DNA of 64,000 nucleotides, taken from contig CM106586.1 of the NCBI GenBank assembly GCA_048013815.1, positions 16,802,001 to 16,866,000 on the forward strand, given 5' to 3'. Positions 17,020-37,625 of this stretch are shown in pieces. The notes below the pieces were generated by a model that ran no database searches, was not told the origin of the DNA, and saw only the letters and a list, made by a program, of their open reading frames with translations. The stretch is from Setoptus koraiensis (lineage: Eukaryota > Animalia > Arthropoda). Position 1 is the stretch's first letter. The number at the start of each line of letters is the position of its first letter. The position numbers and the translations under genes are program-made.

Positions 17020-17638
17020 CACACGCAAGCACCTGTCTCGTCGTTATTATCCGTCTTATTAACGGGCCAGTGATCGGCGTGATGATAGCCATCGACGACG
17101 GCACGATAACGGACGACTTGCGACACGACCTGGGCGCGCCAACTGCACACTGATTGTGATCTAATTATCAGTGCGACTTAATTGTTAATTACCATAACTG
17201 CTGTTGTTGCGCAACAACAACCGTGAGCATCGATGAACGACAGCGGCCGTCACTGGCCGTCACTGGCCGTCATTGGCCGTCATTGGCCGATACACGACGA
17301 GCGAGCGACCGGCGAGACCAGTGAGCAGTAAGTGATTAGCGCCGAAATGTATCGAGATTTTATTTTATTACTGCGCTGCAAATGGACACGAGAACGCAAA
17401 CGAAAACTGGAATGCATGATATATAGATCACGATTATAATTATGGCTGCACCACTGCTGCTGCTGCTGTTGCGATTATGATGATTGCGGTTGCCAGAAGA
17501 ACAAATTGCGCAACAAAAGCAACCACTTTTGCCTCACTGACAAGCACCAGCGAACAGCGAAATATCAACAACTGCCGCCTGTCGCTGGATCACAACAATG
17601 CCGTGTCGTGTATCATTAGCCATGAACAACAACAACAA

Positions 17639-17685
<47 letters not shown>

Positions 17686-18479
17686 ACAACAACAACAACG
17701 ACAACAACGAGCCGCTTATTGATTAGTATCGGAACTAGTTGCGCAACAGCGACAGTTCGACGGTTGCTGCGCGTTGCCGGATTGGTCGTCATCGTCGTCG
17801 TGTTCCTTTTTTATTGTCTAACATTAATTGATAGCACACCTCTTATTGCAACTATATATTATTATACATAAATAAACATTTGTGTTAATTGACACAACAA
17901 CAACAACAACGACAAGCGCACACAATCAATTTGGCCTCGAATGTCGCTTTCGAGAGCTCCCCTTCGTTCTTTGCACCATTCTTTTCGCTGTTCTTTTCGC
18001 TGTTCTTTTCGCCATTCTTTTCATGTGTGGCTTGCGTGTGTGTGTCTGAGTGTGCCAACAAGTGCTTTCAGACGGCAGTTGCATCACCTATTCACAAGTC
18101 ACCTATTGAGTCGCTCTAACAACAAACACACACTGTGTCAGTCAGTGGCAACGAGCAATATAAATGTTTCCGTCGTCAAGCTAGCTTGCCGCCACGGCAA
18201 CACCAACAACGGCAGCCAACATCGATAGGCATGAATAATCTGTGTGCGAAAACATACACAACGAATCATACTATTGGCGTGTGGCCATAGAAAATTGGAC
18301 TGTCTATTTTCGGCATTGTTTTCGCTATTTTCACTGTTCCCGACCGAAAAACGGAGCCGCTAAAAAGATTCGGAAAAAGAGTCGAAAAAAGTCCAAAAAA
18401 GAGTTGGAAAAAGAGTCGAAAAGAGATGGAAAAAAGGGTAAAACCCTAAAAACGAGATTTTCGTGGGCACTAGTTTTAG

Positions 18480-18626: not shown

Positions 18627-20918
18627 TCAGATATTTCTGACGGATCGCTCTTTCACCACGGGCACGAGACCTTCGATTATGGGCCGAGCCTTGGGCACGA
18701 GAGCGTCCACACCTTTTTTGCCGCCCCCGTTAGCGGCCACAATTAGTCCCGTCACAGCGTTCATGGAACTCATGAAGGCGCCCTCTAGCCAACCGCCCAA
18801 ATGAGAATAGCTGTCGCCAGCCAAAAAGAATCGATTGTCGAGCTCGCCATCGAGGGCGTGCGTGTGATAACGGAAACACAGGTGAGTGTTGAAATGTCCG
18901 CCTGCCGAGTCCAGTTTGAAGGCGCCCGAGGCGTGACTAGTGTTCCAGTCGTACGACAGTGTTTGCGTCATGTGTCGCTCTCCTTGGTTGCCCATCAATT
19001 GTCCGAACCACCAGCGCTTGTATTCGCCATCGAGGGGGTCCTTGACGTCGTGCACAGTGTGATTTATAATGTTCGTGATCATTTCTTCATGTTTTTTCGG
19101 TTCTGACTTGTCCCGTTTAGAAATGGGGTACGTCTTGAGCTTGTGCTGCAGCCTTTTGGTGTCGTCCTCCCACGCGTAGCTGATTAGAAAACTGTAATAT
19201 TTGGGGTTTTCTTTGTCATGCAACGAACTGGGCACAATGTAACTCGAGCCAAGCCCACAATCCGATACAACGGCCTTGATTTTTTCTTGCTTAAATTCGT
19301 GAGCGTACTTCTCGAAAACATCCGCCTTAATGGTGCCGAAAATCTTGGACGAGCCAACGAGATTCAATTGATTGATGGCGGCAAAGATATTTACATTGAC
19401 AGGCTCGAATTTGTCGCTCAACATGAGAGCCGGCCTCACCGAAATCGCTCTATCGGCCTGCCGAGCGAAGTCGCCGATAGTGACATCGTGTGCGCGTCCC
19501 GAAAAACCGGCCCGACGAGTTATAGAGCTCAACTGATGCGGCGGCACTGCCAAAATGACGTAATCGTGTTCGTTTTGCAACAGGCGATTCTCTTCTTTTC
19601 CGTAAAAGAAAACTTCTTTCTTGTAAAAGAAAACGAGGGCCTTCTTGGATCCGACACCGTCGCCGGTGTGACAGACATCGCAGACGCGCCCTCGAACGAA
19701 ATCGACCTCGAGGTTCTCATTGTTGCATATGGATTTTTCATAGAGTCCACTGATAAATTCAACGTTCTCCCTGACGGGGAGCGTGAATTCGTAGCTATAA
19801 CTCCACAGGATCAGGCGCATCATTTCGAGAATGGACATGTTGAACAGCGGCTTGAAGCTGCCCGTGCCAAACCCGAAACAGCCGAACAGTTCCACGCAGT
19901 AGTTGAGCTTTTCGTCGTAGTCCTCTAGCCCTTCGATTTCCAGCGGATTCTTTAGTTTTTCCCTGAGGATCATGTTGACTGCCGACCCGAGAGTGAGATT
20001 ATCGTATTTGTTGACAAATTCTTTCCAGCCTCGCTGAATCTCTTCAAGTTTTGAGGGTGTAATTTGGTCGCTTTTGAGGTCTTCACTGATTTTGGCCGGA
20101 TCTTTGCCAGCTATCTTGAACATACTGATGTTGATGTTGTCAAGATGTTCGTTAGTTTTCTCGTCCACACCATACCCTTTCCCTACTAACCCGTCGGCCA
20201 CCCATTCTGAGACTTTTTTAGTGAGCGAATCCTTTTTATCCCATTTGCCGGCTGTGTACCTGTCGACACGATCGCCGAAAACAAACTCGGTAGGAACCTT
20301 GCCGGGGTTGGGAAAGACACCAATGGGTGCATCTTTTCCGAACACAGCATCGACGTATTTCCATGTGAGGCCAGCGATTTTCGGAAAACGCATAGCGCCG
20401 ATCTCGTAGACCGCGTGGTCGCGTTTTGATTCGGCTCCTCTGCTTCTGGCTGCGAACACCCTGCCAGCTCGCTTACATTTGGTGTCCACAGTCGAGAAAT
20501 TTACTGGAGTGCCGCCAGTTAATGAGCACACTCCGTGTTCCGAAGAGCAAAAAGAGAAATGATTCGGGTCCGGCTCGTATACTTTGACACGAATTTTTCC
20601 CGATTTTCTCGCTCGGGCCACCTTTGACAGCTCGTACAGGGAGGCAATGCCCGACGCGCCACCACCAACGATCGCGATGTTGAAATCTTTGCCCTCTGGT
20701 AGCGTGCCAAGAGCCTCTTGGTTCTGAGTGACGTCGGCGTATGGCACGTGCAAAGAATCTGGATGCCGATAATATTTGCCGTCACCAATGACCTCAGAGA
20801 CCTTTTTCGGAACATCGGGACGTATCCCAATAGGCTTCGCCGATTTTGAACGGATACTAATCAGCATGTCCTCCTGAACAGGCTCATCGATGAGCCTCGG
20901 CATGACGGTAATACCCAT
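18627..20918 (-). CDS. Phenylalanine 2-monooxygenase precursor (proPAO)-like flavoenzyme, IaaM/tryptophan 2-monooxygenase family, copy A (763 aa)
   Basis: FAD motif IAIVGGGASG; EIGAMRFP; FPNPGKVPTEFVFG; GFGTGSFKPL; GSSK; SYAWEDD; GAFKL; LCFRYHTHAL; SYSHLGGWLEGAFMS. The N-terminus MGITVMPRL...RHPDS matches the recalled Pseudomonas sp. P-501 proPAO start (MGVTVIPRL...RHPDS). Intronless, CAACAATGG start context. Confidence 0.93.
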   Translation of the reverse strand: MGITVMPRLIDEPVQEDMLISIRSKSAKPIGIRPDVPKKVSEVIGDGKYYRHPDSLHVPYADVTQNQEALGTLPEGKDFNIAIVGGGASGIASLYELSKVARARKSGKIRVKVYEPDPNHFSFCSSEHGVCSLTGGTPVNFSTVDTKCKRAGRVFAARSRGAESKRDHAVYEIGAMRFPKIAGLTWKYVDAVFGKDAPIGVFPNPGKVPTEFVFGDRVDRYTAGKWDKKDSLTKKVSEWVADGLVGKGYGVDEKTNEHLDNINISMFKIAGKDPAKISEDLKSDQITPSKLEEIQRGWKEFVNKYDNLTLGSAVNMILREKLKNPLEIEGLEDYDEKLNYCVELFGCFGFGTGSFKPLFNMSILEMMRLILWSYSYEFTLPVRENVEFISGLYEKSICNNENLEVDFVRGRVCDVCHTGDGVGSKKALVFFYKKEVFFYGKEENRLLQNEHDYVILAVPPHQLSSITRRAGFSGRAHDVTIGDFARQADRAISVRPALMLSDKFEPVNVNIFAAINQLNLVGSSKIFGTIKADVFEKYAHEFKQEKIKAVVSDCGLGSSYIVPSSLHDKENPKYYSFLISYAWEDDTKRLQHKLKTYPISKRDKSEPKKHEEMITNIINHTVHDVKDPLDGEYKRWWFGQLMGNQGERHMTQTLSYDWNTSHASGAFKLDSAGGHFNTHLCFRYHTHALDGELDNRFFLAGDSYSHLGGWLEGAFMSSMNAVTGLIVAANGGGKKGVDALVPKARPIIEGLVPVVKERSVRNI

Positions 20919-21015
20919 TGTTGATGATTTAGATGTTACTTTCGCGAATAAAACTGATTCTTTCGGTTTGGATAACTTCGAGCTTGATTGTCCGATGACA
21001 CTTTGAAATTTGACA

Positions 21016-21370
21016 ATGAGGTTTTGACCTGTGAGTTGTGACGAGTGAACTTTGACGATTTAGTTTAGATTTTCAAGTTTTGACTGTTGAGTTTTGACTG
21101 GGAGTTATTGACTAATGGTTTCTGACTATCATGATTTGACTGTTGGTTTGATTATCTATTTGTTTAATTGTCTGATTTGAGCAAGTCAATTGAATTGAAG
21201 CTTAAACTTTAACTGATGATAAAATGCTCTGAAGTGAACGGTCTTTTATATTGTCTTACATCGAGGACAACCAAAAAATAGTCTCACACATAGCCATCGT
21301 GAAGCACCCAACGATGCACTCGAGTCGAGCGCGTGTGACAAGGCTACAGTACGCACAGAAAGTATGAAAC
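21016..21370 (-). repeat. Duplicated 5' leader/promoter block of copy A (paralog of 24851-25245)
   Basis: Near-identical to the block upstream of copy B, including an 84-nt perfect match (21016-21099 = 24851-24934). Confidence 0.9.
21211..21250 (-). promoter_or_regulatory. TATA box (TATAAAAG) plus arthropod-type initiator (TCATCAGTT) for copy A
   Basis: The minus strand has TATAAAA starting at 21250 and TCAGTT at 21216-21211, 33-36 nt downstream. The arrangement is identical in copy B. Confidence 0.7.
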
Positions 21371-21428
21371 AGTGGTGGCTATCAAGAAAAACTAAAAAAA
21401 AATACTCCATGCCAATTCTCTTTTTTCC

Positions 21429-21899
21429 CGAAGCACGCTCGGCGACGAGCTTGATGAAAAGTCGCCCACTTATGTCATTCAGAAGTTGGAGACAAGAGGG
21501 CAGAGAATCAGAAAAGGGTGTCTCTGGAAAACACCAGTTCCTTCGTTATTAGTCGTAAAGACATACAGGCTTACAAGGAAACCTCCTTGTTAGGCAGTGA
21601 AAAACTGAAAGATGCCGAATCTTCGGAAGGAAGTTTCAAGAGATCCAGTGAGAAATAGGTATAATTCGTTGATGATATCGTCAACCTCAATTTGGAGTTG
21701 TCGGTTAGAGCGCGAAAGAGTGTGCCAACATGAACATGCTCATTGCAGTCACTCGATAGAATTTCGAACCTTCGAAATTCGATTGGTTGAGATTCGAAGG
21801 TCCGTCCAAGTTTCTCGGAACCATCGAGGCAAAGCGAGCAGCTTGCCCGCGATGGATGACGGTGCCTTCGACAAGATGGCTTGGCCATATTTATATTGA
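21429..21899 (+). pseudogene. Heavily deleted inverted remnant of the monooxygenase gene (psi-D)
   Basis: + strand patches translate as RSTLGDELDEKSPT (copy B: RYTRNDWLNEDSPT), GPSKFLGTIEA at 21799-21831 (copy A: GSSKIFGTIKA) and WLGHIYI (GLGSSYI), with stops and frame changes between them. Confidence 0.65.
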
Positions 21900-22079
21900 T
21901 TTGCTTGTGACTGGCACACACCGCGCCAGACCAACAGGTGAGACGAGTTTAGCGCTAGCAGCGCCGAGCCATTGCCAAGTTGCGACAGCAGCAGTGAGTG
22001 TGTTCGCATGTCAGTGGTGAAACAATTCTTTTATGCGTTCTTTTTTGACGTCTCTTTCGAGCGCGTTCTCTTCTGTGAC
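21891..22079. repeat. Conserved non-coding block Q1 (paralog of 26336-26605)
   Basis: Shares tgtgactggcacac, gccagaccaacaggtgagacgagttt and gaaacaattcttttatgcgttc with Q2. Confidence 0.85.
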
Positions 22080-22400
22080 TCACAGACTGTGAGAGCTTTT
22101 CTGTGGAGTCGTGGGCTGCGTCTCCTGTTCACTGCCTGTTAGACTGTACCGCGTGGAAAACTGTACCGCCGATGTCTCCGACTGTAGTTCAAAGAAAGGA
22201 CGGGAGGGGCGCTCACATAAGTCGATAAATGCATCAAGAGCTTAGGTCACCTGGGTTAGGTGTTGCGATAAAGTTACGTTTCTAGTTTTTTTTTCCTGCT
22301 AACTTGTTTTTCATTCATTCCATATCGCGCACGAACCTTTCACACGCAGAAAGCGACTTCAAACGATTCTTTCTTGAACTACAGCGATTATCGCAACTTT

Positions 22401-22406
22401 TTTATT
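22401..22406 (-). promoter_or_regulatory. AATAAA poly(A) signal for monooxygenase copy B
   Basis: tttatt on + strand, ~55 nt downstream of the copy B stop codon. Confidence 0.5.
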
Positions 22407-22460
22407 ATTACTGTTACATTATTACACAATGGGTATTTTATGGCTGGAAATCCGAATTAT

Positions 22461-24707
22461 TCAGATTTTTCTGGTGGATCGGTTTTTCACCACGGGCTCG
22501 AGACCTTCGATTATGGGCCGAGCTTTGGGCACGAGAGCGTCCACACCTTTTTGCCCGCCCCCGTTAGCGGCCACAATTAGTCCCGTAACAGCGTTCATGG
22601 AACTCATGAAGGCTCCCTCTAGCCAACCGCCTATGTGAGAGACGCTGTCTCCGGCCAAAAAGAATCGATTGTCGAGCTCGCCATCGAGGGCGTGCGTGTG
22701 ATAACGGAAACACAGGTGAGCGTTGTAATGTCCGCCCGGCAAGTCCATCTTGAAGGCACCCGAGGTATAGCTGGTAGTCCAGTCGTACGACAGCGTTTGT
22801 GTCAGGTGCTTCTGGTGCTCGTCGTCGGCCATTAGTTGTCCGAACCACCAACGTTTGTATTCGCCATCTTCGGGGTCCCTGACTTCGCGCACAGTGTGAT
22901 TTATGATGCTTGTGATCATGTGTTCGTGTTTTTTCGGCTTGGACTTACCCGCGTGGTTAATGGGGTACGCCTTGAACTTGTGTTGCAATTTTCTCGAGTC
23001 ATCATCCCACGCGTAGCTGATAAGAAAACCGTAATATTTGGGGTCACTTTTGTCGCCCAGTGAACTGGGCACAATGTAACTTGAGCCGAGCCCACAATCC
23101 GATACGACCGCTTTGATTTTTTGTCCGTGAAAATCGCGAGCGAACCTGTTGAAAACGTCAGCCCTAATGGTGCCCCAAACCTTGGATGAGCCACACATGT
23201 TCACCTGATCGATGGCAGTGAAGATATTCACATTGACAGACTCGAACTTGTCGCTCAACATGAGAGCCGGCCTCACCGAAATCGCTTTATCGGCCTGTCG
23301 AGTGTAGTCGCCAATTTTGACATTGTGAGCGCGTCCCGAAAAACCGGCCCGACGAGTTATAGAGCTCATCTGATGCGGCGGCACCGCCAGAATGACATAA
23401 TCGAATTCGTCGTGCAAAAGGCGATTGTCTTCCTCTCCTCTTTCACTCCTGTAATAGAAAACTAGAGCCTTCTTGAGTCGGGCATTGTCGCCGGTGTGAC
23501 AGACGTCGCAAACGCGCCCTCGAACTACTTCGACCTCAAAATTCTCATTGTTGCAATGGGATATTCTGAACAGACCCCTGATGAATTCGACATTCTCCTT
23601 GACAGGTAGCGAGAATTCATAGTCGTAGCTCCACAAGGACAGGCGTATCGTTTCTAGGACGGATGTACTGAACTCGGACCTGACGCCTCCCGTGCCAAAC
23701 CCGAAACAGCCGAACAGTTGTACGCAATATTGTAGCTTTTCTTCGTCGCTTTCTAGTCCTTCGATTTTCAATTTTTTCATTTCCGCCAGTTTGGTCTTGA
23801 GAACCTTGGTCACTGCCGACCCCAGGCTGAGATTGTCGTGTCTCGTGACGTATTCTTTCCACGCTCGCTGCATCTCTTCAAGATTTGAGATTTTTTCGGC
23901 TTTGAGGTCTTCGCCGAATTTCGCCGCATCTTTGCCGTTGATCTTGAACTCGTCCAAACAAACATCTGGAAGCGGGTTTCCCTTTTTGTCTTTGTACGGA
24001 TTTCCTATTAGCGCATCATTAACCCATTTCGAGACCAGTTTAGTGGGCGAATCCTCATTCAGCCAATCGTTGCGTGTGTACCTGTCGACGCGATCACCGA
24101 AAACAAACTCTGTAGGGACTGTTCCGGGGTTGGGAAACTCGCTTATGATGGCGTCTTCGCCGAACACAGCCTGAGCGTATTTCCACGTGAGCCCGGCAGT
24201 TTCCGGGAAACGCATGGCTCCTATCTCGTAGACAGCGTGGTCCTCTTTAATCACATCGCCCTTACTTCTGGCTGCGAACACTCTACCGGCTCGCTTACAT
24301 TTGGTGTCCACCTTCAAGGAATTCAGCGATGAGCAGACTCCAAATTCACAAAAAGAGAAATGATTCGGGTCCGGCTCGTATAATTTAACATGGATTTTCC
24401 CCGATTTTCTCGCTCGGGCCACCTTTGACAGCTCGTGCAGGGAGGCAATACCCGATGGGCCACCGCCAACGATTGCGATATTGTAATCAACGCCCTCTGG
24501 TAGCGTGCCGAGAGCCTCTTGGCCCTGGGTGACGTCGGCGTATGACGCGTGCAAAGAATCAGGGTGCCGAAAGTATTTGCCGACACCACTGACTTCCGAG
24601 ATCTTCTTTTTGAGAATTACATGGGGAATGGCCGATTTCGAAGTGCTTCGAGGGATATAAGCCTCAGGAGCACCGGCGAACAGTCTTGGCATCATGGTAA
24701 TACCCAT
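22461..24707 (-). CDS. Phenylalanine 2-monooxygenase precursor (proPAO)-like flavoenzyme, copy B (748 aa), with altered substrate pocket
   Basis: Same motif set as copy A. The true ATG is at 24707 (CAAAATGG context, MGITMMPRL); the track's start at 24737 is a TTG. Intronless. Confidence 0.93.
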   Translation of the reverse strand: MGITMMPRLFAGAPEAYIPRSTSKSAIPHVILKKKISEVSGVGKYFRHPDSLHASYADVTQGQEALGTLPEGVDYNIAIVGGGPSGIASLHELSKVARARKSGKIHVKLYEPDPNHFSFCEFGVCSSLNSLKVDTKCKRAGRVFAARSKGDVIKEDHAVYEIGAMRFPETAGLTWKYAQAVFGEDAIISEFPNPGTVPTEFVFGDRVDRYTRNDWLNEDSPTKLVSKWVNDALIGNPYKDKKGNPLPDVCLDEFKINGKDAAKFGEDLKAEKISNLEEMQRAWKEYVTRHDNLSLGSAVTKVLKTKLAEMKKLKIEGLESDEEKLQYCVQLFGCFGFGTGGVRSEFSTSVLETIRLSLWSYDYEFSLPVKENVEFIRGLFRISHCNNENFEVEVVRGRVCDVCHTGDNARLKKALVFYYRSERGEEDNRLLHDEFDYVILAVPPHQMSSITRRAGFSGRAHNVKIGDYTRQADKAISVRPALMLSDKFESVNVNIFTAIDQVNMCGSSKVWGTIRADVFNRFARDFHGQKIKAVVSDCGLGSSYIVPSSLGDKSDPKYYGFLISYAWDDDSRKLQHKFKAYPINHAGKSKPKKHEHMITSIINHTVREVRDPEDGEYKRWWFGQLMADDEHQKHLTQTLSYDWTTSYTSGAFKMDLPGGHYNAHLCFRYHTHALDGELDNRFFLAGDSVSHIGGWLEGAFMSSMNAVTGLIVAANGGGQKGVDALVPKARPIIEGLEPVVKNRSTRKI

Positions 24708-24850
24708 TTTGGATGTTTTTCGTTGACACTTTGACAAATAAAACTGTTTCTATCGGGTTGAATTACTATCTGTGGCTTGATTACTTGGTATCACTTGGGA
24801 TTTTGACTATGGGATTTTGACCATGGGATTTTGACTATGAGGTTGTGACT

Positions 24851-25245
24851 ATGAGGTTTTGACCTGTGAGTTGTGACGAGTGAACTTTGACGATTTAGTT
24901 TAGATTTTCAAGTTTTGACTGTTGAGTTTTGACTAGGAGTTCTTGACTAATGGTTTCTGACTACCAGTTTTGACTGTTGGTTTGATTATCAATTTGTTTA
25001 ATTGTCTGATTTGAGCAGGACAATTGAACTGAAGCTTTAACTTTAACTGATGATAAAATGCTCTGAAGTGATTGGTCTTTTATATTGTCTTACATCGAGG
25101 ACAACCTAAAAATAGTCTCACACATAGCCATCGTAAAACGCCCCTCGATGCACTCGAGTCGCCCGATCAACGAGTTGCGTAATATCGTTACATGACATTT
25201 GAGCGCGTGTGACAAGGCTATAGTACGCGCAGAAAGTATGAAACA
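24851..25245 (-). repeat. Duplicated 5' leader/promoter block of copy B
   Basis: Paralog of 21016-21370, with a B-specific 40-nt insertion at 25161-25200. Confidence 0.9.
25045..25084 (-). promoter_or_regulatory. TATA box plus initiator for copy B
   Basis: TATAAAA at 25084-25078 and TCAGTT at 25050-25045 on the minus strand; same spacing as copy A. Confidence 0.7.
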
Positions 25246-25304
25246 CAGTGCTGTCTGTCAATAAAAACCAAGAATAAACACCCCATAACAATGTAATGAG
25301 AATG

Positions 25305-25957
25305 GTAACAATTGGTCGACAAATGCGTCAACATCAATCTAGAGAGGCCGAATAAAATCGTTATCAAGGCCAACTCAAAGAAAACGGTATAGTCAAAACA
25401 AGACTCGCTGAAAATTGAAGGACCAATAAACGACGACGACAAGCTTGGCCACTGCGTTCAGCCAATAATGACACGCGATATTACTGTTTTCTCATTGACT
25501 GTGCGTGGGAGGGTGTCACCAACACACAAACCGAAATCGTGCCCCATCAGTCGTATGAGCGGCATGTCAAGTCGGACAGTCAATAATATTGACTCAATAT
25601 GGTCTAACGCGTCATAGATCACACTGAGCGTCATGTCGGATATCCCAATCTCGGCTTCGAATGCAGACGTTTGTGGTTCTGAAAACTGTGGGCTCATGAA
25701 GACAATGGGCGACACTTGTCGGAAACCCTGTTCTGTGGTTGCGGCACGAGCCATGCCTCGGGGCCTTTAGCTGTACGCGACACGCAGCGTCTAAATGAAT
25801 TCCGTCTCTGCCTGGTCACCTTGAACGCGGAGCCGGGATTTATTGTGAAGCCAAATCGAGGTCTGAACGGCGTGGTTCCCGAGGCACGCCCCATGATTCG
25901 CGAATAGCTTGTTGTGCCGACCCGACCCGTGAGGAATGGACGAACGAAAAAATCGGA
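25305..25957 (+). pseudogene. Inverted pseudogene of the C-terminal half of the monooxygenase (psi-C)
   Basis: One + frame reads VTIGRQMRQ, YYCFLIDCAWEG, VIDHTERHVGYP, RHLSETL...TSHASG and VVPEARPMI. These match VTIGDFARQ, YYSFLISYAWED, IINHTVHDVKDP, RHMTQTL...TSHASG and LVPKARPII. In-frame stops include 25584, 25590, 25605, 25680 and 25905, and the GAFKL...GGW segment is deleted. Confidence 0.85.
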
Positions 25958-26335
25958 ATTTGATTTTCTGTAGCATGAAAAAAAAACTTTGCCTGGTTGT
26001 TCGAAATTTGGTAGACTAATAAAAGTTACAAAAAGCAGCCATGTTATAAAATAAAATTTCCAAAATAAAACAAGTTCACCCTCCGCAGGGCATGTCAACC
26101 AGGGGTTCCAGGTGTGATACTATCACAGTGATAGCAATCTAAATCACCTTTTTTTGCGCGACTTTTTCCCTTTTTTCGCGACTCCTTTTTTCGTGGCTTT
26201 CGTTTTTTTCTCTGAAAAAGTCTCTGATGAAAACATTGCTGAAAATAGACACACTGCGACTTGCGAATCGACACTCGCGCGCACGCCCATCACACAATAA
26301 TATTGTGACAATATACACACACATGGATATTTTAT

Positions 26336-26605
26336 TTTATATTGATCAACCTGTGACTGGCACACTACGCCAGACCAACAGGTGAGACGAGTTTGGCTTG
26401 CCAAGGCTCGCCGTGCCGAGCCGTTGCCGAGTTGCCGATTCGGCGATTCGCAGAGTTGCCGAGTTGCCGATTGGCCGATTCGCAGAGTCGCCGAGTTGCC
26501 GAGTCGCGAGCGCTGAACCGAACTTGAACGAATGTCAGCGTTGAAACAATTCTTTTATGCGTTCCTTTTTGACAACTCTCTTAGCAGCGCGTTCTCTTGT
26601 GTGAC
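26336..26605. repeat. Conserved non-coding block Q2 with internal tandem expansion
   Basis: Paralog of 21891-22079, with an internal gccgagttgccgatt-type duplication. Confidence 0.85.
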
Positions 26606-29600
26606 AAGCGTCTCTCTTGCGAGTTGCTTTTGCTCTTTTCTATAAAGTCATCTCTGTGTTGCATCACCCATTGGCCGCCTGTCTGGCTGTGACAAGTGGC
26701 GCTACATCAAGTGTCACAACTTGTTTATTATTATTACATTATTATACATCATAAACGTTGTTTGTTTCTACTCGGCGGCACACACTGTCAGGCCTGACAA
26801 AGTTGCTCTTTATTGGGCTCTCGGTGTTTGTCTACGCCAAGCGCATTATTTCTGGCGAGCGTTTTGCTGGCCGGCGAGCCGCACACAAAAGCCTTTTCGT
26901 TTTTCCAGTTTCAGCTGCTCCGTCGCGGCTGTTGCCGTTGTCGTTGTCGCTGTTGCCGTTGTTGCCTTCAATGTTGTCGGTATTGCCGTCGTTGTTGTCG
27001 TTGTCGCTGTTGTCGTTGGCGTACCCTGCAGTCGAGCATTCGCCCGCCGAGAGTTGAGCCGGTTGTCGTTGTCGAAGCGAATTAATGCAGCGCATTTCAC
27101 CTTGCCGCTCGCTCATGACTCATGACAAACTCACCAAAGCCGGCCTGACAATTCGGGCACAGTGTCGCCAGTCGCCAAGGTGAACAAATATTGACTACTG
27201 CGCTGGCTGCGAGTCGCAATTGGGGCTCGCTCGTTAGTCTCGCCGCTCGTTAGTCGCACGCCAGCGAGTCGGCGAGCCAGCGACACAACTAACCAGCGAC
27301 ACAACGAGACAGCGACACAACGAGACAGCGACACAACGAGACAGCGACAAAACGACAAGGCGAGACGGCGAAAGCGAGCTTGGCATTGGCGAGCATCTGG
27401 CCGGCTCGCGAGCGCTGTCCACCCGTACCTGTTGATATTTTGTGTTGTTTATTATTAATATTTGCGCTGTTACATTTCGCTATCTCGCTCTGTTCAACAG
27501 AGTCGGTTGCGAGTCGGCGCTCGACAGCCACGCAATGGGTTGACGTTGCCGGCCGGCGCCAGCAAAAGCGAGCCAGCAAAAGCGAGCAAGCAAACGGAGA
27601 CGGAGAGCAGGCAAATTGTTATGTCAAATTGCGCTGCCAGTCGGAGTCGCAATGACGAGCGAGCGAAAGTTGAATGAAACGGTTTATAATCTCTGATTTA
27701 GTTGTTATCTCTTTAGACTAACTGTGCATTGTGCAGTTAAACACACGACTGATTGGACCGCTTTATCCGCAGTCGTTGTTGCCGTTGCCGTTGTTGTTGT
27801 CGTTGTTGTTGTTGCCGTTGTTGTTGCCGTTGTTGTTGTCGTTGTCGTTGTCGTTGTTGTTGTTGCCGTTGTTGTTGTTACAACTGTTTTGTTTGAAATA
27901 AAACACTTGTCGTGCATTGTATTTCAATAACAGTGGGACATTGAACGGGTCCGCTCACTGCTGCCGAGCGACACGGCCACCTATGTGCGCTGCCCAAGAG
28001 CGACTCTCGGCCGATCTCACGGCTAGCCCTGGCCGACAGCATTTAATGGCAACCACAGCAACCGCCAAAAACCAAACAACCGCTAACCTTCTTACCTGTC
28101 CGTTTCGCATGTCCGTCGGGCGCCCTTTCCGAGCGCTGTGCCGGTTGCCGGCCCGACCCGGCCACTCTTGTCGCCCACTTGCAGCGGCCGCTGTCGAGCA
28201 CCGCGACAATCAATGAATTTTTGCCCGATTTCTTACCGATTTTTGGCCCATTTTCGCACAATTTTTGCACAATTTCGCTTGGCTCCAATTCATCCACTTT
28301 CTCCGCCGTCTTTATGCCCACATGACCATGTCAGGTCAATCGATTCATCGGCCCGCTAGACGAGCCCCGGCCGACCGAACGAGACGCGCCCAAGCGTTCG
28401 CGACAATTTCGCTGCTGGCCGCGGCAAAATGGCAATCACTGTCACCCGCGAACAATTTGAAATGGGCAAAACGAATTTGCGAGCCGTTCGGCCGATACTG
28501 GCCGCAGCATCAACAATTGGCCATGTTGCCAATTGTCGACACCGGTCATCGGGCGCGCTGGCCATTGTTGCAGGCGGTGCTCGCGCTGGCGTTCCGCGTC
28601 GCCTCAATTGTCAAACGGCGACACAGCAAACTTTTCGTCAATGTGACGTTCCGCTCGCCGCTGCTACATGTCTCGCCGCCGCGAACCAACGACAGGCCGC
28701 CGCGAACCAACGACAGGCCGCAACAAGCAAACGACAGGCCGCAACAAGCGGCTCTGATGGACGATAATTGAATTGGAAACAATTGGACGGAAACAATTAA
28801 CAAAAACGAGCGCCTGTCCGATGGTGCGACGTCGAACGTCACGCCGATAATAAATAAGGCGCCGGCCATGATGCGCCGATAATAATAACAACAATAATGG
28901 CTTTAATTGCGTCACACAAACAATGGCCAAGAGGCACGAATGGGACAATTGTTTGTTTTTCGCTTCTTCCATCGTTTGGCGCCGCTCAAACCGACCAATT
29001 TCGCCCGTCAAAACCGCCTGCGCGCTGTCATTGTCGCTGCTGTTGGCTGCGCGGTTGCCCGTACTGTCGGCGCACTTCCGGCCCGATACAGGCCCGTCCG
29101 TGTATTTTTAGTCGCTCGCTAACCTTGTGCGACGGCGACAGCGCCAGCTACGGCAACTACGGCAACTACGGCAACTACAGGAACAGCGACAGCAACGACA
29201 ACAACGACAACAACGACAACAACGACAGCAGTGACACCGACAACAGCGACGACGACAACAGCGACGACGACAACAGCGACGACAACAACAACGACAGGTG
29301 ACGGCCTCGCGAGCCGAGCGCGAGAGCGAGAGAAAGGGAGAGAGAGCGAGAGAGGGAGAGAGCGATGGAGAGAGAGAGGGAGAGAGAAAATAACAGAGAG
29401 AGAGAGCGCAATTAGTTCTGGAGCGATTCACCTGGTCGAGAGCGATCGCTGGCATTGTTGCATGAAATGAATGGATTAATCAAATAGATATAAATCACAG
29501 CGGCGATTACAAATGGCAAATTAATGCTGGCTAACAAGCTCGCTGGCTCGTTGTGAGTCGCAATTTACAGGTTGCGACGGCTCGCAACTTGCCAGCGAGC

Positions 29601-31374
29601 TTGTTGTGAGCGAAAACCGGAACTGATGGCTTCGTTCGGCAATTTATGATATTAATAAATTCAGCGTGTGCTCGTCGCCCTATTTAACTCGTCGGCTCGC
29701 AGCATAAAAGTGTCACTGAGCCCACCATATATCATATTTGGCGCCGCGCTGGCTAGGCCCGCGGATCATTAATTTCGTTCGTCGGGCAACTGGTTATCAG
29801 GCTATTTGTTGCATTTATGATTGAGCAACCAGCCGACCGGCCGGCCGGCCGACTAACCGATCGCTGCGCTCGGCAAGCCAACCGGTGAATAGCGACCGGC
29901 GGCGCGAAAAAAACAGCAAGCGGACGATCCATTAATTTTTGACATCTCTCTCTCTCTCTCTCGGTTTCGCGCTGTGCCCACAAAAGTCACTCTCGCCGCT
30001 ATCGAGACTCCCGATAGCGGCGACATGATTTGCATGGATTCGCTCAGGTGAGGGGCTCGCTATTGCGGCGACCGGCTCGTCTCGTTGCCGCGCCACCCGG
30101 TCGCCGGCAATTCGGCGCCGACTGGCAAGCTAGTGGTCGTCGGTCGGTTGTTGACGACCGGCCGACAGCCCGGCGGTTGTGTGCGAGCGGCAATCATCAT
30201 CATGCAAATCATCGTCAATCGCACATGTCATTCGGGTGAGTCGGAAGCTGCGTCGGCCGGCCGCCGAATCATAATCGCGATTACGATAAAAGTGATTTAT
30301 TCATTTTCTCATGCAAACGATGCAAGCCTGTCCGAATTGTTGCCGCTGTTCGAGTGCAATTACACCTTTTCTCCCGTCCGCCGCCCGACATCCGCCGCCC
30401 GATATCCGACGTCCGATATCCACCGTCCGATGTCCGCCGCCCGGAACCCGCTGCCCGGAATCCGCCGCCCGGCATTGGGCGCCCGATACTTGCCGTCTGA
30501 CACGACGATCGCCCGATCAGTCTGATCGGATCAGAGTTATGTAACGTTAATTGTTGTTGTTGTCGCTGTGATTCCGCTCGCAGTTGTAGTGCCACTCGCG
30601 GCTAATTAGCAATCACTGCTTATGCACGCCGGCCGCGTTCGTGAGTTGTGATTGGCGCCAATTGGGCAGCCAATTCGAGCGAGCCGCTTCGAACGGGTTA
30701 CGGCGACGAGTTTTTGATTTTTTGTTTTAGTCGGCCGGTCGGTCGGTCGGTCGGTCGGGCCGGCCAACCGAAACGTCGACGGGAGCGCCGGCCAGCGACA
30801 ACCAATGGGCTTGTGGCGCGGGCGTCCACTGATGCGGCCCGATCGACGGATTGATTTTGACAGACGCCGTCTGTTGTCAGAATCAATTGGTTGTTTGTGT
30901 GTGTGTGTGTGTGCGACACAATTAACGGCTCGGTGACATCAACGGGCAAACAGTGCAAAATCAATCAGGGTTAATTGAGATTTATCATTTTATTTTTGGC
31001 CACACTCGAACTGTTCGAGTCGAACAGCGGCTGCAAAGTGGCCAACGGGCCGGCTCTCGATTGCGTGCCCGTAGCCGTTGGAAGCCCGGCAAGCAGACTT
31101 TTGCCCCATCACAGGTGATGCCGGTTCCCATTGGCAATTGTTAGTCAATTGAGAGTCAACACACACACATTTAGTTTGTTTGCAAAGCCAAACAAGCGAG
31201 TGACGCAACAGCAAGCCAAAAGGCCGACAGACTCACTTTCGGGCCGTCGACGGCAAGCGGCCATCAGATGATATTTATAGCCGTCCGATTGGTGCCACTC
31301 TGGTCACTCATTCTAGTTAGTGTCTTAATTATGCCGCTGTTGTTGTTGCTGCTGCTGTTGTTGCTGCTGCCGCA

Positions 31375-31405
<31 letters not shown>

Positions 31406-32355
31406 CTGCTGCTGCTACAGTTGATGTTGTTGTTGCAGTTGTTGCTGCTGCCGCAGTTGATGTTGTTGTTGCCGCTGCTGTGTGACCGTCAATGGGCTCG
31501 ATTCGATTCAATGTTAATCGCCGAGCGCTCTCATTACTTTCGTTGCTGGCAACGGCTTAATCCGTTGCCAGTTTCAAGTTTCCAATTTGGACTTGCGCTC
31601 GAATTGGCGCACCAATTGAGCCAGTTCAATTTATTTAACGCTGCGCTCACAACAAGCCGCTCTCACAGATAAATTAAATGCGTTGGCCGGCCGCTCGTCG
31701 GCGAAACCGGCGCCATCTAGACAACAGGTTGTCGTGGCCAGACATAGGGCACAGTCGATGTTTATGTGGCTCATTAGTGGCATTATTGGACGCTCATCGT
31801 TTGACGCTAACCAGCTCGCCGAGTCTCGCCGTCTCGCCGTCGAAAGTCTTGCCGTCCGCAGTCTCGCCGTTGGCCGGTCCGGCGATGCTGGCCCCAATCC
31901 GTTGAGCCGACCGTCTCATCAGCAGCGACTCATGGCGCATGAGTCGCATGCGGCAACTGGCAGCAATGGCATCGGGCCATTTGTTGTGCAAATGCGCAAT
32001 TCATTGCAACTCGATTCATGCATCAAATCAGCTTGCGTAATCGAACACACTAGCTCATTACGTAACTAGCGACCAGTTACGTAATGAGCCAACCACTGTC
32101 TGTGTCTCTGTTGTGGGCAGTCTGCATCATACGCAGTCGCCATTACATTACAGACTGCTTACATGTGCGGCTGCACCGGTAACGGATGAGTGATGCTGGC
32201 CGCGGCAGCGCAACTTTTAAAGAGTTTCGTTGCGTCGCCGCGAACGCCGATAACGCCGAGAACGCCGAGAAAGAGCAACGTCCAACTTTCAACACTTTTG
32301 CGGCCAACTGCCCATTCAAGCAACATGTTGCGCCTGTTGCGTCATTCTCACACAC

Positions 32356-32358
<3 letters not shown>

Positions 32359-32412
<54 letters not shown>
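32359..32412. repeat. (AC)27 microsatellite
   Basis: Read directly. Confidence 0.95.
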
Positions 32413-32416
<4 letters not shown>

Positions 32417-32550
32417 GAAGAGACAGCGGATAAAAGCGCGCTGACACACAAACGCAACGAGCACAACAACAAACACAAACAACAAACACAGGCCAACAGG
32501 TTGATCGAGCGCTGCACAGATTCAATATTGAGAGCGCGCCGGATGGCCTA

Positions 32551-32690
32551 TTACGCAATGGTCACTATGACGCAATGGTCACTATTACGCAATGGTCACT
32601 ATGACGCAATGGTCGCTATGACGCAGTGGTCGCTGTTACGCAATGGCCAATATTTCGCAATGGTCAATATTACGTAATGGTCAATAATGG
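32551..32690. repeat. 17-bp minisatellite (t[t/g]acgcaatggtcacta), ~8 degenerate copies, most carrying a bZIP-type site
   Basis: Head-to-tail copies read directly. Confidence 0.9.
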
Positions 32691-34669
32691 CCGAGCTCAT
32701 CGGGCGCGAGTGACTGGTTGCAGGCGCTGTACCATGCTGTATAATGCTGTATAATGCTGCATAATGCAGCATAATGCAGAGTGTGTGTGCTGCCATTATG
32801 GCCGACACTTGGCGCCGCCAACGGACCGACGCAGCGATGAAAGTGACCCGAAGGTGGCCGGTCCGGCCCGGCCGCCGCATCGCGATCAGGTGTGCGGCGG
32901 CGGCGGGCGCGGTGAATCGCGGGCGGCCAAACAAGCGCGCCCTAACGAGCCGTTGCGGCGGCTTGCGTTGGCTTGCGCACACACAAACAAACACACACAA
33001 ACAAACACACTGACAAACACACTGACAAACACACACTGACAAACCGTTTGTTGTTACTAATGAAAAATTAATGATTGCGTAACAGCAACACAAGTGTGTG
33101 GCCGGCCGAAACTCAATCGGCGCGCCAGAGTCAATTGAATGGCCGCCTCATTAATTGCCCATAGCCATCTGTTGGCCATAGGCAGCAATTAATTGTGTTT
33201 GCGTTGGTGGCCCACAATCGGTTGATGCCAACAGTTGCCGCAGTGTTACCTACGCTGGTGTCTATATGCTACGTCTAAATGGTTTAAATGAGGCACAAAC
33301 AAACAGACAGACGGACAGACGGACACTTGTTTGTGTTGCGTCTCACATTGTTGTCGTTGCGTAACCGCGGCCAATGTTTGCTGTTGTTGCTGTTGTTGGC
33401 ATAGTTACGCAATGGCCGCTAATGGCCGACGATGACGATAATAGATGCGAGAGTGGAATCGCTAGCGGCCAGCCGATGGCAGCCAGCCGATGGCAGCCAG
33501 CCGATGGCGGCCAGCGAGATCATTGGCAGCCGCTTAATGATGCCAACCGCTACAACTAATGAGCCGCTATGCATACACACACAGGTATTCATATCGATGA
33601 ATATTCACTTGTTGCCGGCTTCGGCCGGCAGAGTGTGCTCGGCGTAGCTTACGTAACTTGTGCGGCTGCTTGTATCAGCCAGTGGCCGGTGCCCACACGA
33701 TTATCACGCTGACCGTTTGTGACTGTGGGTCGCCGGTGAACCGCCGGCAAGCGACTTGGCTGAATGATATTTGCATGGCCAGTGGCGCCGACATCGATGG
33801 CTTGTGCGCCGGCGAGCGAGCGACGGGCCGAGCGACGGAGAATCGGCGATCAAAGTGGCAAACTGTTGCCCAATTGGATTAGGCCGACGCGATTGCGTAA
33901 CCGTTGCTGCATCTGGCCAGATACACATTACATCTCATTACGCATGAGCATGTGCAAAACTAAATGCGGCATCGCTGACGAGGCGAAGCTCATTGTGCGA
34001 CTCGGCAAACCGAGCTCGCCGCTTTCTTTTTTTGTCCATTCGTCTAGACAGGCCAATGGACCGATGGTGTGGGCTCGTTGGCTCATGGGCCTATGAGACA
34101 TAGGCAAATATGTTTTTATTTGGCCATTCTCTCTCAGTCTCAGTCTCGCTTATCTGTCAGTTCCATTTATCACTCACAAAAGTCATGTGACTCTGTGACA
34201 GGCCCGCTCACTGCCGGTCACTGGCTGGCCGGCCAGCAGTGAGCGGGCCGGCTGACCGGCCGGCTGACCGGCCAGCTGACCGGCTGTCAGTTGGCAGTTG
34301 CGCAGCGAGCAGTTAGCGCATTGTTGGCGATCGTAAAAATATCGCAAAAATGCCTGCTCGCCTGTCCGCTCATGTGAGCGTTGGTCAGCGCGACGGCGAG
34401 TGACGCAACAATCGCCGCTGCCAACAATCCACAATGGGCCAGCAAACGCACTCTGGCACAACAGCCAACGCACAAGGGCCAATGCAAACACACAAAGGCG
34501 GCGTGATTATATTATTTTCCTCGCCGTGGCCATCCGACCGAGCTGACCACTGTCACTGACCGCGCTCGAGTAACGGCCGACAACAGGTTGCAGCATTCGC
34601 GGCGGTCACTCGCTAATGTTTTGTTTTTGCCAGTGTTTGTTTGCGATTGTGTTCGCCTGTCATTGTCAT

Positions 34670-34676
<7 letters not shown>

Positions 34677-34746
<70 letters not shown>
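34677..34746. repeat. (GT)35 microsatellite
   Basis: Read directly. Confidence 0.95.
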
Positions 34747-34747
<1 letters not shown>

Positions 34748-36370
34748 CGGTTGCGGGCTTCAACTCGGCCGAGAGTGGCGCGCTATCGGATGAGCGGGTC
34801 CCCAGTTCAGGCTCGCGCGAAGCGCGCTGACAATTGAACGCCGGCCCGGGCGAATCTCGAGTTTTCGAGCTCGCCAATCCGCTTGCTAGCGCATTCTTGT
34901 GGGTTTATCTGGCGCCATCCTGTTGCGGCCGGCGGCCGGAAGGTGGCCTCGCTCGACGCACTTGTTGCCACACTGATGGTGCCAACGAGGCAAGGCGGCA
35001 ACGTGGCAAGACGACACGGCACGGCAATGTGACAACTTGACATTTTGCCATCATCGATCATGCAGGGCCTGGTCTATGTCGAGAATCTCGGCACATAAAA
35101 CCTCGACAGTCCACAATCTCGACGCTCAATGGCTCGACAGTTTGATACACCGAATGTAAACAACATCGACACCGTGGACAAAGTCATAATTCGAACAAGG
35201 TTCCTGACAAAACATCGACACCCGAGAACATTGTACAGTCGACAGTGCGAAATGCCGACAATGCGAAACGTCGACTGTGCGAAATGTCGACAGTGCAGAA
35301 TTTCGAATCTGGCAAATTTGTCAAATTCGGGCTTCGAGACTTTTCGGCCGCTCCAACTTTCGGATGTCGCTCGATAAGCACTTGTTGACCATCATCGAGC
35401 ATCGCCGACCGTCGTCGAGCATCATCGAGCATCGCCGACCGTCATCGGCGGCCATCAGCGGCCATCAGCGGCCATCATCGGGCGCATTCGTGGCATTTCG
35501 GCCAGCTTCGGCGGTTCTTTTCGAGCGGCCAGTTCAATGGCCAGCGAGTTCGGCCAACAACGGGCAGATTACTCTCATTTGTGTCGCTCGTTTTCATTCA
35601 GTTGGCTCGTTTTCATTCAATTGGCTCGTTTTCGCCAGCATTCTGCCAGCTCGGCTCATCTTGGCAGCCCGATGATAATGAGCGCCAACGGTGCCGGTGG
35701 GCAGCGCGCCGGTGATCAACGACACCACCATAGGGCACCCTCATAGTGTGTCAGTCGTAGATGTATCGCATATGTGCCATGCCCGACAGAGATCGCTCAC
35801 GCAGATATTTGGCCTGTCGAGCTTGCAGTTGTTGGCGTTCCTTCGGCCAGTTGCGTTCTTTTGGCCGCTTGCCTCTTCTCTCATAGTGAGTTTGCTGACC
35901 GTCCTGGGGCGCAATTGGCCGCTCCGACGCACCGAGTGCGAACCAGCGAAAGCCATGCTGATGACCACTTAAGGCTGATTAATGGCCTTAACCTGGCGGC
36001 CAGCTCTCTCTGTCCGACGCAGTCCAGCGCAATTCACATTTCGTCGAGCGACGCTATTCGAGCGACCGTATTCAAGTGGCCACTTTGCGGCCTGATCTAA
36101 ATCTGATTACGGCCACGCTGGCCATTATGCGCCCATCGGCGTGGTCGCGGCTGGCTCGCCGCGCCGGCTCGCTCCACGTCGCCGGGCAACGGACGCCAGA
36201 TTGGCCCGCGAGGGACTCGCTGATTTGTTTGTTTGGCGGGCCATTTTCGCAGCCTCAACAGGCCAATTGGCCGTCTGCCGGCCAATGGCCGGCAGACGGC
36301 GAATGGGCAAATGACGAAACGACAAACGTCGATCATTGACGCTCGAAGGCCGCTTGGCGGCGCCATTTCG

Positions 36371-36437
36371 AAGCGGCGAAAATTCTAAGCGGCGAAAATT
36401 CTAAGCGGCGAAAATTCTAAGCGGCGAAAATTCTAAG
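36371..36437. repeat. 16-bp tandem repeat aagcggcgaaaattct x4
   Basis: Four perfect copies, no spacers. Confidence 0.95.
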
Positions 36438-37558
36438 GCTGCCGCTCCCGCAACCAGCTCGGCGGAGCGGCCTCCCCCGCTCGGCATTGGCCCGTCGTGC
36501 CGGCCGACAGGTAGTCGGTCACAAGCTCGAGTAACGTTGCGCGAAGCTCACGGCCGCTCGCAAGCGCTCGGCCGCTAGCAAGCGCTCGGCTGGACTGGCT
36601 AATGGGCCGAATTGCGGTTGCAAATCGGCTCAGAACGGCTTGCCAGTGAGAAGCGCTTAGGCCGCCAAGCACTCAAAGTGGCTTCGAAATGAGCCGGCTC
36701 GCCATTTCGAATGTTGCACGCGAATAGAGTGGCGAGCGCCAGGCGAACAGGCGCTGCCCAAAGGCGAGTCGTGCTGGCCGCCGAGGTTAAGGTTGCGCCG
36801 GGCATGACATCGAACGGTGAATGTCGAATTGGTTTTGTTCGTGAGCTTGCACTAATGAATTCGCCGCTCGCCGCTCGCCGCTCGCAGCCAATTCATCTCG
36901 AGCTTGGCCAATTCGGCTGGGCCGCTCTTGAGCTGCAATCCGTTCCATTGTGGATCTATTATGGCTGTATCATGGCTGTATGATGGCTGTATGATGGCTG
37001 TATTATGGATATTGTGGATATTGTGGCTGCATTATGGATGTGTTGCGGATTGTGGCATTGTGGATGCGCTGCCGTCAGTCACAATCGCGCCAGATTTAAT
37101 CATCGCAATAGAAATGGTCTCATGGTTCAATGGGATTAGCTCACTTATCGGCTTACGCGGCCACCGCGGCCCGACCAAAGCAAACAAACACCAAAATTAT
37201 CTCATTTAATATTCTGTCCGCTCGCGCCAACGAAATTTTCGGTGTATTTTCGTCACACAATAACGATTATTGTTTGACCCTGCGCTGGTGTCAATACGCA
37301 TACGTATATATAAATACATAACAAGCTCGCTTGTTTGTTTGGTCGGCTCGGTTGCGAGCCAATTAAACAAACTTTGCCAGCGAAACTTTGCCAGCGAGCG
37401 GCCACAAACTGGTTGCGCTAATTTGCTCGAAATAGCCGCCAGATGAGCGCCATCGATTCAATCACGTCACCACTGAATGAGTGCCGAGATGTGATTGCAT
37501 AATTAGCGCCGGCCGAAGTGCGTTGCGCGGCCGGCCGTCGAAACGACGCTGCATGTCA

Positions 37559-37625
37559 TGTCGACGATTTCGTCCTGTCGACGATTTCGTCCTGTCGACG
37601 ATTTCGTCCTGTCGACGATTTCGTC
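37559..37625. repeat. 17-bp tandem repeat tgtcgacgatttcgtcc x4
   Basis: Four near-perfect copies, no spacers. Confidence 0.95.

Follow-up and report, generated by a model that had tools for sequence, protein, structure and literature searches.

Two tandem genes for phenylalanine-oxidase-type proenzymes in a mite nuclear genome, with close relatives on the mobile elements of arthropod symbionts

The described enzyme nearest to the genes reported here is the L-phenylalanine oxidase (PAO) of Pseudomonas sp. P-501 (2yr4, 3ayj), a proenzyme that matures through loss of its first 14 residues, the plug of the substrate funnel, and of residues 107-108 (PMC7844570). Its aromatic pocket is shaped by Phe316, Leu319 and Gly659, and the position of Leu319 is the key specificity determinant. 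In the L-Lys-specific L-amino acid oxidase/monooxygenase of Pseudomonas sp. AIU 813 (3we0, 5yb6), Asp238 binds the side-chain amine at this position, and activity on L-Lys rises further in the D238E mutant; the residues Arg102, Tyr416, Trp418, Ala515 and Trp516 of the same enzyme, which have substrate-binding and cage roles, are stated to be conserved in PAO (PMC5832979). The tryptophan monooxygenase (TMO) IaaM of Pseudomonas savastanoi and Agrobacterium (4iv9) belongs to the same flavin amine oxidase branch, has the same chemistry (amide plus CO2) and makes a product for the same plant amidases. Transfer of a gene of this kind to arthropods is already known for tms1 of mealybugs and is visible in the annotations of sciarid flies. 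Here we describe two such genes, A and B, in a 64-kb stretch of mite DNA (contig CM106586.1; the window in what follows). New here are the occurrence in a mite, a second copy with a remodelled pocket and the connection to mobile elements of symbionts.

The two genes lie in tandem on the minus strand of the window, which is without N runs or assembly gaps:

18627..20918, minus strand: gene A, intronless, encoding a 763-aa PAO-type flavoenzyme proenzyme (open reading frame (ORF); homology to 2yr4)
22461..24707, minus strand: gene B, encoding a 748-aa paralogue of A with an altered pocket (ORF; start at the Met of MGIT)

An earlier sequence-only reading of this DNA had described two complete, intronless ORFs of these lengths and had pointed to their likeness to the P-501 proenzyme. 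Both ORFs are where it had placed them, and contigs from four runs contain zero joints within either gene. The likeness is full-length: copy A matches pro-L-phenylalanine oxidase 2yr4 with a phmmer E of 6e-169 (query 38-757, chain 15-704), whereas its match to TMO (4iv9) consists of two patchy stretches (E 7.8e-18). The proposed membership in the IaaM/TMO family holds for the broad enzyme group, but the genes are of the PAO type and are not IaaM orthologues. The comparisons support placing A and B in the PAO branch of the PAO/TMO/Lys-monooxygenase group; in Pfam the generic Amino_oxidase domain alone was recognised, above cut-off. The copies are 70% identical to each other. The ORF of gene B extends beyond the Met of MGIT to a TTG at 24737, with no in-frame ATG upstream. 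Gene A has an in-frame 21-nt tandem duplication at 19592-19634 (VFFYKKE / VFFYGKE) that is absent from copy B and from the bacterial relatives.

We consider it likely that A and B are two nuclear mite genes that go back, through tandem duplication, to one PAO-type gene of a lineage carried by symbiont mobile elements. Horizontal transfer into the mite nuclear genome is well supported. The genes are flanked on both sides by eukaryotic genes in the gap-free window, and a tblastx comparison with donor-type loci gave noise only, with no phage, insertion sequence (IS) or symbiont DNA around the genes or in the spacer between them. The short-repeat surroundings described earlier are also present, with tandem repeats flanking the genes, for example (AAC)14 at 17625-17708. 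The GC content at third codon positions (GC3) is 0.60 in A and B. Neighbouring host genes have values of 0.44-0.70, and the closest bacterial relatives 0.21-0.31. The stretch is present in runs with three organism labels from at least six studies. Read runs were placed over 19101-25100. In the DNA run X1 the depth is flat, at 84-190, over both genes and the spacer (127.7 in bins 21101-22300), and one X1 contig spans the spacer into gene B. Read coverage that is flat over the genes and a non-bacterial spacer speaks against the bacterial contaminant that the sequence-only reading had named as a refutation. Run X5, the library type of which is not on record, gave a transcript-like pattern, with a depth of 9-35 over both gene bodies and leaders and of 0 over 21101-22300. 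Its depth is 19-35 over gene B and 16.7 through 24701-25100, and its coverage of the gene A leader reaches ~21045-21100. Two RNA-flagged runs, among library types that are partly guessed, also contain parts of gene A (two pieces in X11, and X25). From the X5 coverage pattern we infer that both genes are expressed.

The two copies differ at the substrate pocket. Residues were compared in an alignment of 27 family members, and the roles of the residues were taken from the literature. The alignment places the pocket codons as follows:

19845..19856, minus strand: pocket codons of copy A, F355-K-P-L358, equivalent to PAO Phe316 to Leu319
23673..23684, minus strand: pocket codons of copy B, V342-R-S-E345 (F316V, L319E)

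The motif for flavin adenine dinucleotide (FAD), GGGxSG followed by a conserved Glu, is invariant (G85, G87, G90 and Y114-E115) in A, in B and in P0001, P0002 and P0003, three bacterial relatives described below. The residues Arg143, Tyr536, Trp538, Gly659 and Trp660 of PAO, which bind the carboxylate and the amine and form the aromatic cage, are kept in A, in B and in all 27 members. At the three positions of the aromatic pocket (Phe316/Leu319/Gly659) copy A has the canonical F/L/G, as in the P-501 enzyme. Copy B has V/E/G, a combination unique among the 27 sequences, and additionally Tyr654Val. The Trp-type pocket of TMO (Phe244/Val247/Gly518) is not matched by either copy: in place of its Val, A has Leu and B has Glu. 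The probable reaction of copy A turns Phe, and Tyr, into phenylacetamide and CO2. For copy B, action on Phe or Trp is unlikely, and its V/E/G pocket speaks against the earlier suggestion that both enzymes act on these aromatic substrates. Its substrate class probably differs from that of A and most plausibly comprises basic amino acids such as L-Lys, by analogy with the AIU 813 enzyme: the position of Asp238 is acidic in copy B as well, and Glu at this position, in the D238E mutant, works well on L-Lys. The two proteins are very distant, and in copy B a Val replaces the pocket-narrowing Trp235, giving a wider pocket; the specificity of B is a prediction. The remodelled pocket and the long branch of copy B (see below) fit neofunctionalisation.

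Both mite proteins begin with the conserved motif of the zymogen plug:

20877..20918, minus strand: zymogen plug of copy A, N-terminal 14 codons (MGITVMPRL...)
24666..24707, minus strand: zymogen plug of copy B, N-terminal 14 codons (MGITMMPRL...)

The motif MG[IV]T[VI]xPxL is kept from Burkholderia and Ralstonia through the mite and is retained in all arthropod copies aligned, in agreement with the N-terminal prosequence that had been proposed for both genes. The mite copies differ from the P-501 enzyme in their nuclear location, in ~16 additional residues past the plug and in the internal (alpha/beta) cleavage loop, which is present but enlarged and Cys-rich; copy B differs further in its Val/Glu pair and in Tyr654Val. 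Neither A nor B has a signal peptide (N-terminal Kyte-Doolittle maximum of 1.4), as had been noted earlier, and the peroxisomal targeting signal PTS1 is found in no family member. An upstream exon or alternative start that would supply a signal peptide was considered and excluded, given the in-frame stops upstream and the contigs that run colinear through the leaders. Both copies are predicted to be cytosolic, without targeting signals. Without a signal peptide, the pair more likely exerts its biological effect through a small molecule (amide, acid or H2O2) than by injection of the protein itself. One member of the insect clade, P0008, has in residues 1-23 a signal-peptide-like extension (hydrophobic core LVFFFASCLL) where Met-Gly is the usual beginning, which suggests that secretion of the enzyme evolved in one arthropod lineage or more.

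The comparison of A with B gave a dS of 0.54 and a dN/dS of 0.34 over 745 codons; with these values the duplication is old and both copies are under purifying selection. The terminal branch of B in the careful family tree is more than twice as long as that of A (0.32 versus 0.14). The duplicated unit took in ~0.45-0.6 kb of upstream DNA, which is 83% identical between the copies. The non-coding parts of the locus are:

20919..21416, minus strand: leader/promoter block of gene A, with a TATAAAAG box at 21243-21250, 14-nt AGTTTTGACT-type repeats and one upstream ORF of 6 codons
24708..25292, minus strand: leader/promoter block of gene B, with a TATAAAAG box at 25077-25084, the same repeats and one upstream ORF of 5 codons
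21417..22460, no strand assigned: spacer between genes A and B, with an AATAAA for the 3' end of gene B at ~22401-22406

The TATAAAAG box is TATA-like in both promoter blocks, the leaders are 325-370 nt long, and the pair is provided with AATAAA signals. Arrays of the 14-nt repeat, with the core AGTTTTGACT, occupy 21076-21113 and 24796-24983 in the two 5' leaders, and exact copies of the repeat occur nowhere else in the window. The repeat may have a regulatory function in the promoter unit that was duplicated. One contig of run X6 departs from the window sequence at 25053, and its next letters are those of the opposite strand ~550 bp away (~25587-25612). This break could be an inversion or other variant over the TATA region of gene B in another sample, or an artefact of the assembly graph.

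The family to which A and B belong is rare, with 15 clusters alone at E<1e-30 among 1.84 billion representatives. Among the 82 hits of a search of 5.8 billion proteins the only named animal matches were from mealybugs and sciarid flies (Planococcus citri, Bradysia and Pseudolycoriella), all 45-48% identical to the mite copies. The P. citri gene corresponds to tms1, the transfer described by Husnik et al. 2013, which later papers list (PMC4943190) and discuss (PMC5322300); the latter groups mealybug tms1 with amino-acid metabolism and reports slight over-expression in the bacteriome. The mealybug genes (P. citri, Trabutina mannipara and Maconellicoccus hirsutus; "tryptophan 2-monooxygenase oxidoreductase") share with the mite pair their clade, bacterial origin, nuclear location, occurrence as several paralogues and the MG.T plug. 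The sciarid genes, annotated "phenylalanine 2-monooxygenase precursor-like", belong to the same clade and share these traits. The mite genes differ from these transfers in their chelicerate host, in the 45-48% identity and in grouping, at moderate support, with symbiont-borne bacterial genes. The published donors of the insect genes are Pseudomonas, Burkholderia and Ralstonia, whereas the relatives on symbiont mobile elements found here are closer.

These closer relatives, P0001, P0002 and P0003, are bacterial, 49-58% identical to the mite copies (54-58% for P0001), and all three lie on mobile DNA. The surroundings of P0001 (L001 1-11506) have 37% GC and contain several IS elements, a Rhs/YD-shell gene and an ankyrin-repeat gene. 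The IS110 element of this locus is 83% identical to an IS110 of the plasmid pCher of Cardinium, and there is one short match to a plasmid of Cardinium from a dust mite. The source of P0001 is probably an intracellular arthropod symbiont, and the matches to Cardinium amount to a weak link with that genus. P0002 (733 aa; L004 10001-12202, also on L005) is on DNA that over 9.3 kb shares 98.8% identity with bacteriophage APSE-2. The gene is located between the tail-fibre gene P37 and the integrase, where APSE-2 itself has ~380 bp and the attP site alone. Among species-representative bacterial genomes a single locus matched, in the Arsenophonus endosymbiont of the whitefly Aleurodicus floccissimus. 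This copy (L010 3916-6109) is 95% identical to the APSE-borne gene, sits beside APSE-like tail genes of a prophage and is split into three ORFs of 445, 121 and 173 aa. No homologue is encoded in deposited phage records, and the PAO-type gene may be an unrecognised cargo gene of APSE. The cargo genes of this phage are typically anti-eukaryote toxins, and their transfer to insect genomes is established; the PAO-type family is not mentioned in that account (PMC8455502). The mite genes resemble the APSE toxin genes of insect nuclei (cdtB, aip56, sltxB and rhs; Verster et al. 2021) in that an APSE cargo family is also found, intact and maintained, in arthropod nuclear genomes. They differ in that the family is not among the described cargo, is placed beside attP and not in the classical toxin cassette, and encodes a metabolic flavoenzyme and no recognised toxin.

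In the tree the mite pair, P0001, P0002, P0003 and the insect copies form a 100/100 clade. It has a long stem and is nested within a set of bacterial sequences that includes Ralstonia, Burkholderia and Pseudomonas. The insect copies have a clade of their own (99/98). The mite pair groups with the symbiont-borne genes at 86/81 in the careful tree, and at 92 with P0001 in the quick tree; the branching among P0001, P0002, P0003 and the mite pair is not resolved, and no phage remnants flank the mite genes. The bacterial origin claimed by the sequence-only reading is thus upheld by the nesting and by the few metazoan relatives, but the donor was not simply a free-living Proteobacterium, the nearest relatives being on symbiont mobile elements. 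A single mite-plus-insect clade was not rejected by the approximately unbiased (AU) test (p 0.41), and for this reason independent acquisition rests mainly on the patchy taxonomic distribution. Searches for eriophyoid orthologues, with the full-length protein and with a C-terminal fragment that could pick up broken contigs, returned nothing above 54% identity. A further full-length member, P0051, comes by its annotation from Scutellospora calospora, an arbuscular mycorrhizal fungus, and has a long branch outside the arthropod clade; it may represent another transfer or be of endobacterial origin.

The host is a plant-feeding mite, probably of the eriophyoid group. The large neighbouring ORFs are eukaryotic and include an M13 peptidase, a cytochrome-b5/reductase fusion and, at 44345-45793, a USP39/Sad1 orthologue without introns; intronless housekeeping genes count in favour of an eriophyoid. 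The USP39 protein is ~63% identical to those of other Acari and 59% to that of the eriophyoid Aceria tosichella, with which it groups at 100/99 in a maximum-likelihood tree in which both branches are long. It is 90% identical to a protein on the Logan contig L009, which is syntenic at 78-84% nucleotide identity over the USP39-to-cytochrome-b5 region alone. A high-scoring USP39 match in Phthorimaea operculella was considered as possible mite contamination, and this was ruled out, the gene being a genuine, intron-containing moth gene. Published eriophyoid genomes are ~32-35 Mb in size and mostly intronless, with two chromosomes where assembled telomere to telomere (PMC7738191, PMC11879100). The distance of 15 kb to housekeeping genes that had been given earlier needs correction: USP39, the nearest recognisable one, is 19.6 kb from gene B, and the closest host ORF, encoding a Q/N/H-rich protein of 1750 aa, ends 1.6 kb from gene A. 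The 20 further ORFs of the window contain no amidase (iaaH), as the sequence-only reading had also noted, and no other bacterial domain; Rfam gave no match in the window. Some 15 kb at 25300-39900 have 50-55% GC, no ORF of more than 170 aa and no Pfam or Rfam match, an unusual feature where tiny intergenic regions have been described for this type of genome.

On the reading that we favour, one bacterial PAO-type proenzyme gene would have been captured and later tandem-duplicated along with ~0.6 kb of upstream DNA. The donor would most likely have come from a gene lineage riding mobile elements (APSE-like phage, IS-rich DNA) of intracellular arthropod symbionts and would not have been a free-living plant bacterium. 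Synthesis in the cytosol would in each case yield an inactive FAD proenzyme, with the substrate funnel plugged by the first ~14 residues, and proteolysis would activate it. Copy A would convert L-Phe, and probably L-Tyr, mainly to phenylacetamide and CO2, with a side reaction to phenylpyruvate, NH3 and H2O2; copy B, in which Val and Glu replace Phe316 and Leu319, would probably act on other substrates, most plausibly basic amino acids such as L-Lys. Several points weigh against parts of this account. Support for uniting the mite pair and the symbiont-borne genes is just 86/81, and these sequences have an unusual composition in common. The Cardinium link consists of short IS matches plus ankyrin repeats. 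The substrate shift of copy B is deduced from two residues, by analogy with an enzyme that is ~19% identical. The expression call from X5 depends on a coverage pattern in contigs that carry no strand or poly(A) information, and the eriophyoid placement of the host depends on one gene with long branches.

As to the origin of the genes, their derivation from a symbiont through contamination or misassembly, and not from the mite chromosome, is highly improbable. It would gain some weight if the assembly is the published telomere-to-telomere eriophyid one, which was put together from contaminating reads in a plant sample (PMC11879100). Against it, the window is gap-free, with a flat DNA depth over the genes and the non-bacterial spacer, and has no other donor-type sequence nearby; the nearest bacteria have half the GC3 of the genes; the leader, with its TATA box, was duplicated along with the gene; and the stretch is found in several independent runs. 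A different history, in which one ancient acquisition was common to the mite and the insects, or in which the gene passed from arthropod to arthropod and was not captured independently from symbionts, would agree with the AU test, and terpene synthase genes have been proposed to have moved between mites and Sciaridae (PMC11665903). We consider it improbable, as the best tree unites the mite pair with the symbiont-borne genes, the gene is missing in nearly all other arthropods in the 5.8-billion-protein search, and the identity of the mite copies to the insect proteins (45-48%) is below that to P0001 (54-58%).

For the function of the pair, plant manipulation through phenylacetamide and phenylacetic acid (PAA), chemical defence and amino-acid handling are each doubtful when taken singly. 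The sequence-only reading had favoured an animal analogue of iaaM, in which the mite delivers phenylacetamide or indole-3-acetamide (IAM) while feeding, plant AMI1-type amidases convert these to PAA or indole-3-acetic acid (IAA), and the tissue is reshaped or galled. The idea is chemically coherent and attractive, yet somewhat weakened, and we consider it unlikely. Copy A has an intact Phe-type pocket, and PAO is described as decarboxylating Phe to the amide. The claim that plant amidases of the AMI1 type take both amides is borne out by the literature, in which they prefer phenylacetamide and accept IAM too (PMC4844348). Auxin-like activity has been reported in mite salivary secretions, from a source not known (PMC8907322); the host is plant-feeding and probably eriophyoid, and transcript-like contigs occur in runs seemingly from an infested host plant. 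The lack of a signal peptide on A or B and of an amidase or other pathway gene in the window speaks against it, as do the PAO type of the genes, distinct from TMO/IaaM with respect to the Phe/Leu/Gly pocket in place of Phe/Val/Gly, and the non-aromatic pocket of copy B. The same clade is kept, in multiple copies, in mealybugs and sciarid flies, which are not known gall-formers, and on symbiont phage, so retention of the gene requires no gall or auxin function. The more specific proposal, in which phenylacetamide from the mite is turned into PAA by plant AMI1 and explains the auxin-like saliva of eriophyoids, with copy B giving a different amine-derived product, seems unlikely. The auxin idea would fill a gap: in the published genome of Fragariocoptes setiger no hormone-pathway gene of foreign origin was found (PMC8907322), and the foreign genes of Aculops lycopersici are UGT and pantothenate transfers alone (PMC7738191).

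A defensive or antimicrobial zymogen, inherited as such from the donor, is a possible, if speculative, alternative. The cleaved enzyme would make H2O2 or phenylacetate-type compounds, or would deplete Phe and Tyr, against microbes, predators or parasites. Such a role would suit a family with a close homologue as cargo by attP in the APSE phage, whose cargo is typically anti-eukaryote toxins that move to insects (PMC8455502), and with a member, P0001, that adjoins a Rhs toxin gene. L-Amino-acid oxidase precursors have been described as held inactive since H2O2 is toxic (PMC7844570), the plug is kept in all arthropod copies, and one insect-clade member gained the signal-peptide-like N-terminus. 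PAO, however, acts on Phe mainly as a monooxygenase and makes little H2O2, and the mite copies are without a secretion signal. That the pair serves internal metabolism, in the catabolism or buffering of aromatic (A) and basic (B) amino acids or in nitrogen recovery in a stripped-down genome, is also unlikely in our estimate. It would account for a predicted cytosolic protein without targeting signals and for two paralogues with differing pockets; eriophyoid genomes have lost many genes (PMC7738191), and the classification and bacteriome expression of mealybug tms1 (PMC5322300) point in the same direction. A plugged zymogen, on the other hand, is an odd design for a housekeeping catabolic enzyme, and no partner enzymes were identified.

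We found no report of PAO-type gene transfer in mites in the literature consulted, and the supplementary files consulted for A. lycopersici make no mention of the family. In the screen of that genome the best metazoan score was subtracted from the best non-metazoan score (PMC7738191). We infer that screens of this design could miss the gene once other arthropods, such as mealybugs, carry the same foreign gene. The relatives on symbiont mobile elements suggest a common route by which mealybugs, sciarid flies and the mite each acquired it. The reshaping of plant tissue by eriophyoid mites is a long-standing puzzle, and an intact, selectively maintained enzyme whose predicted product is preferred by the auxin-forming amidases of plants makes the question testable. 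If true, the auxin-precursor reading would represent an animal version of the bacterial iaaM strategy.

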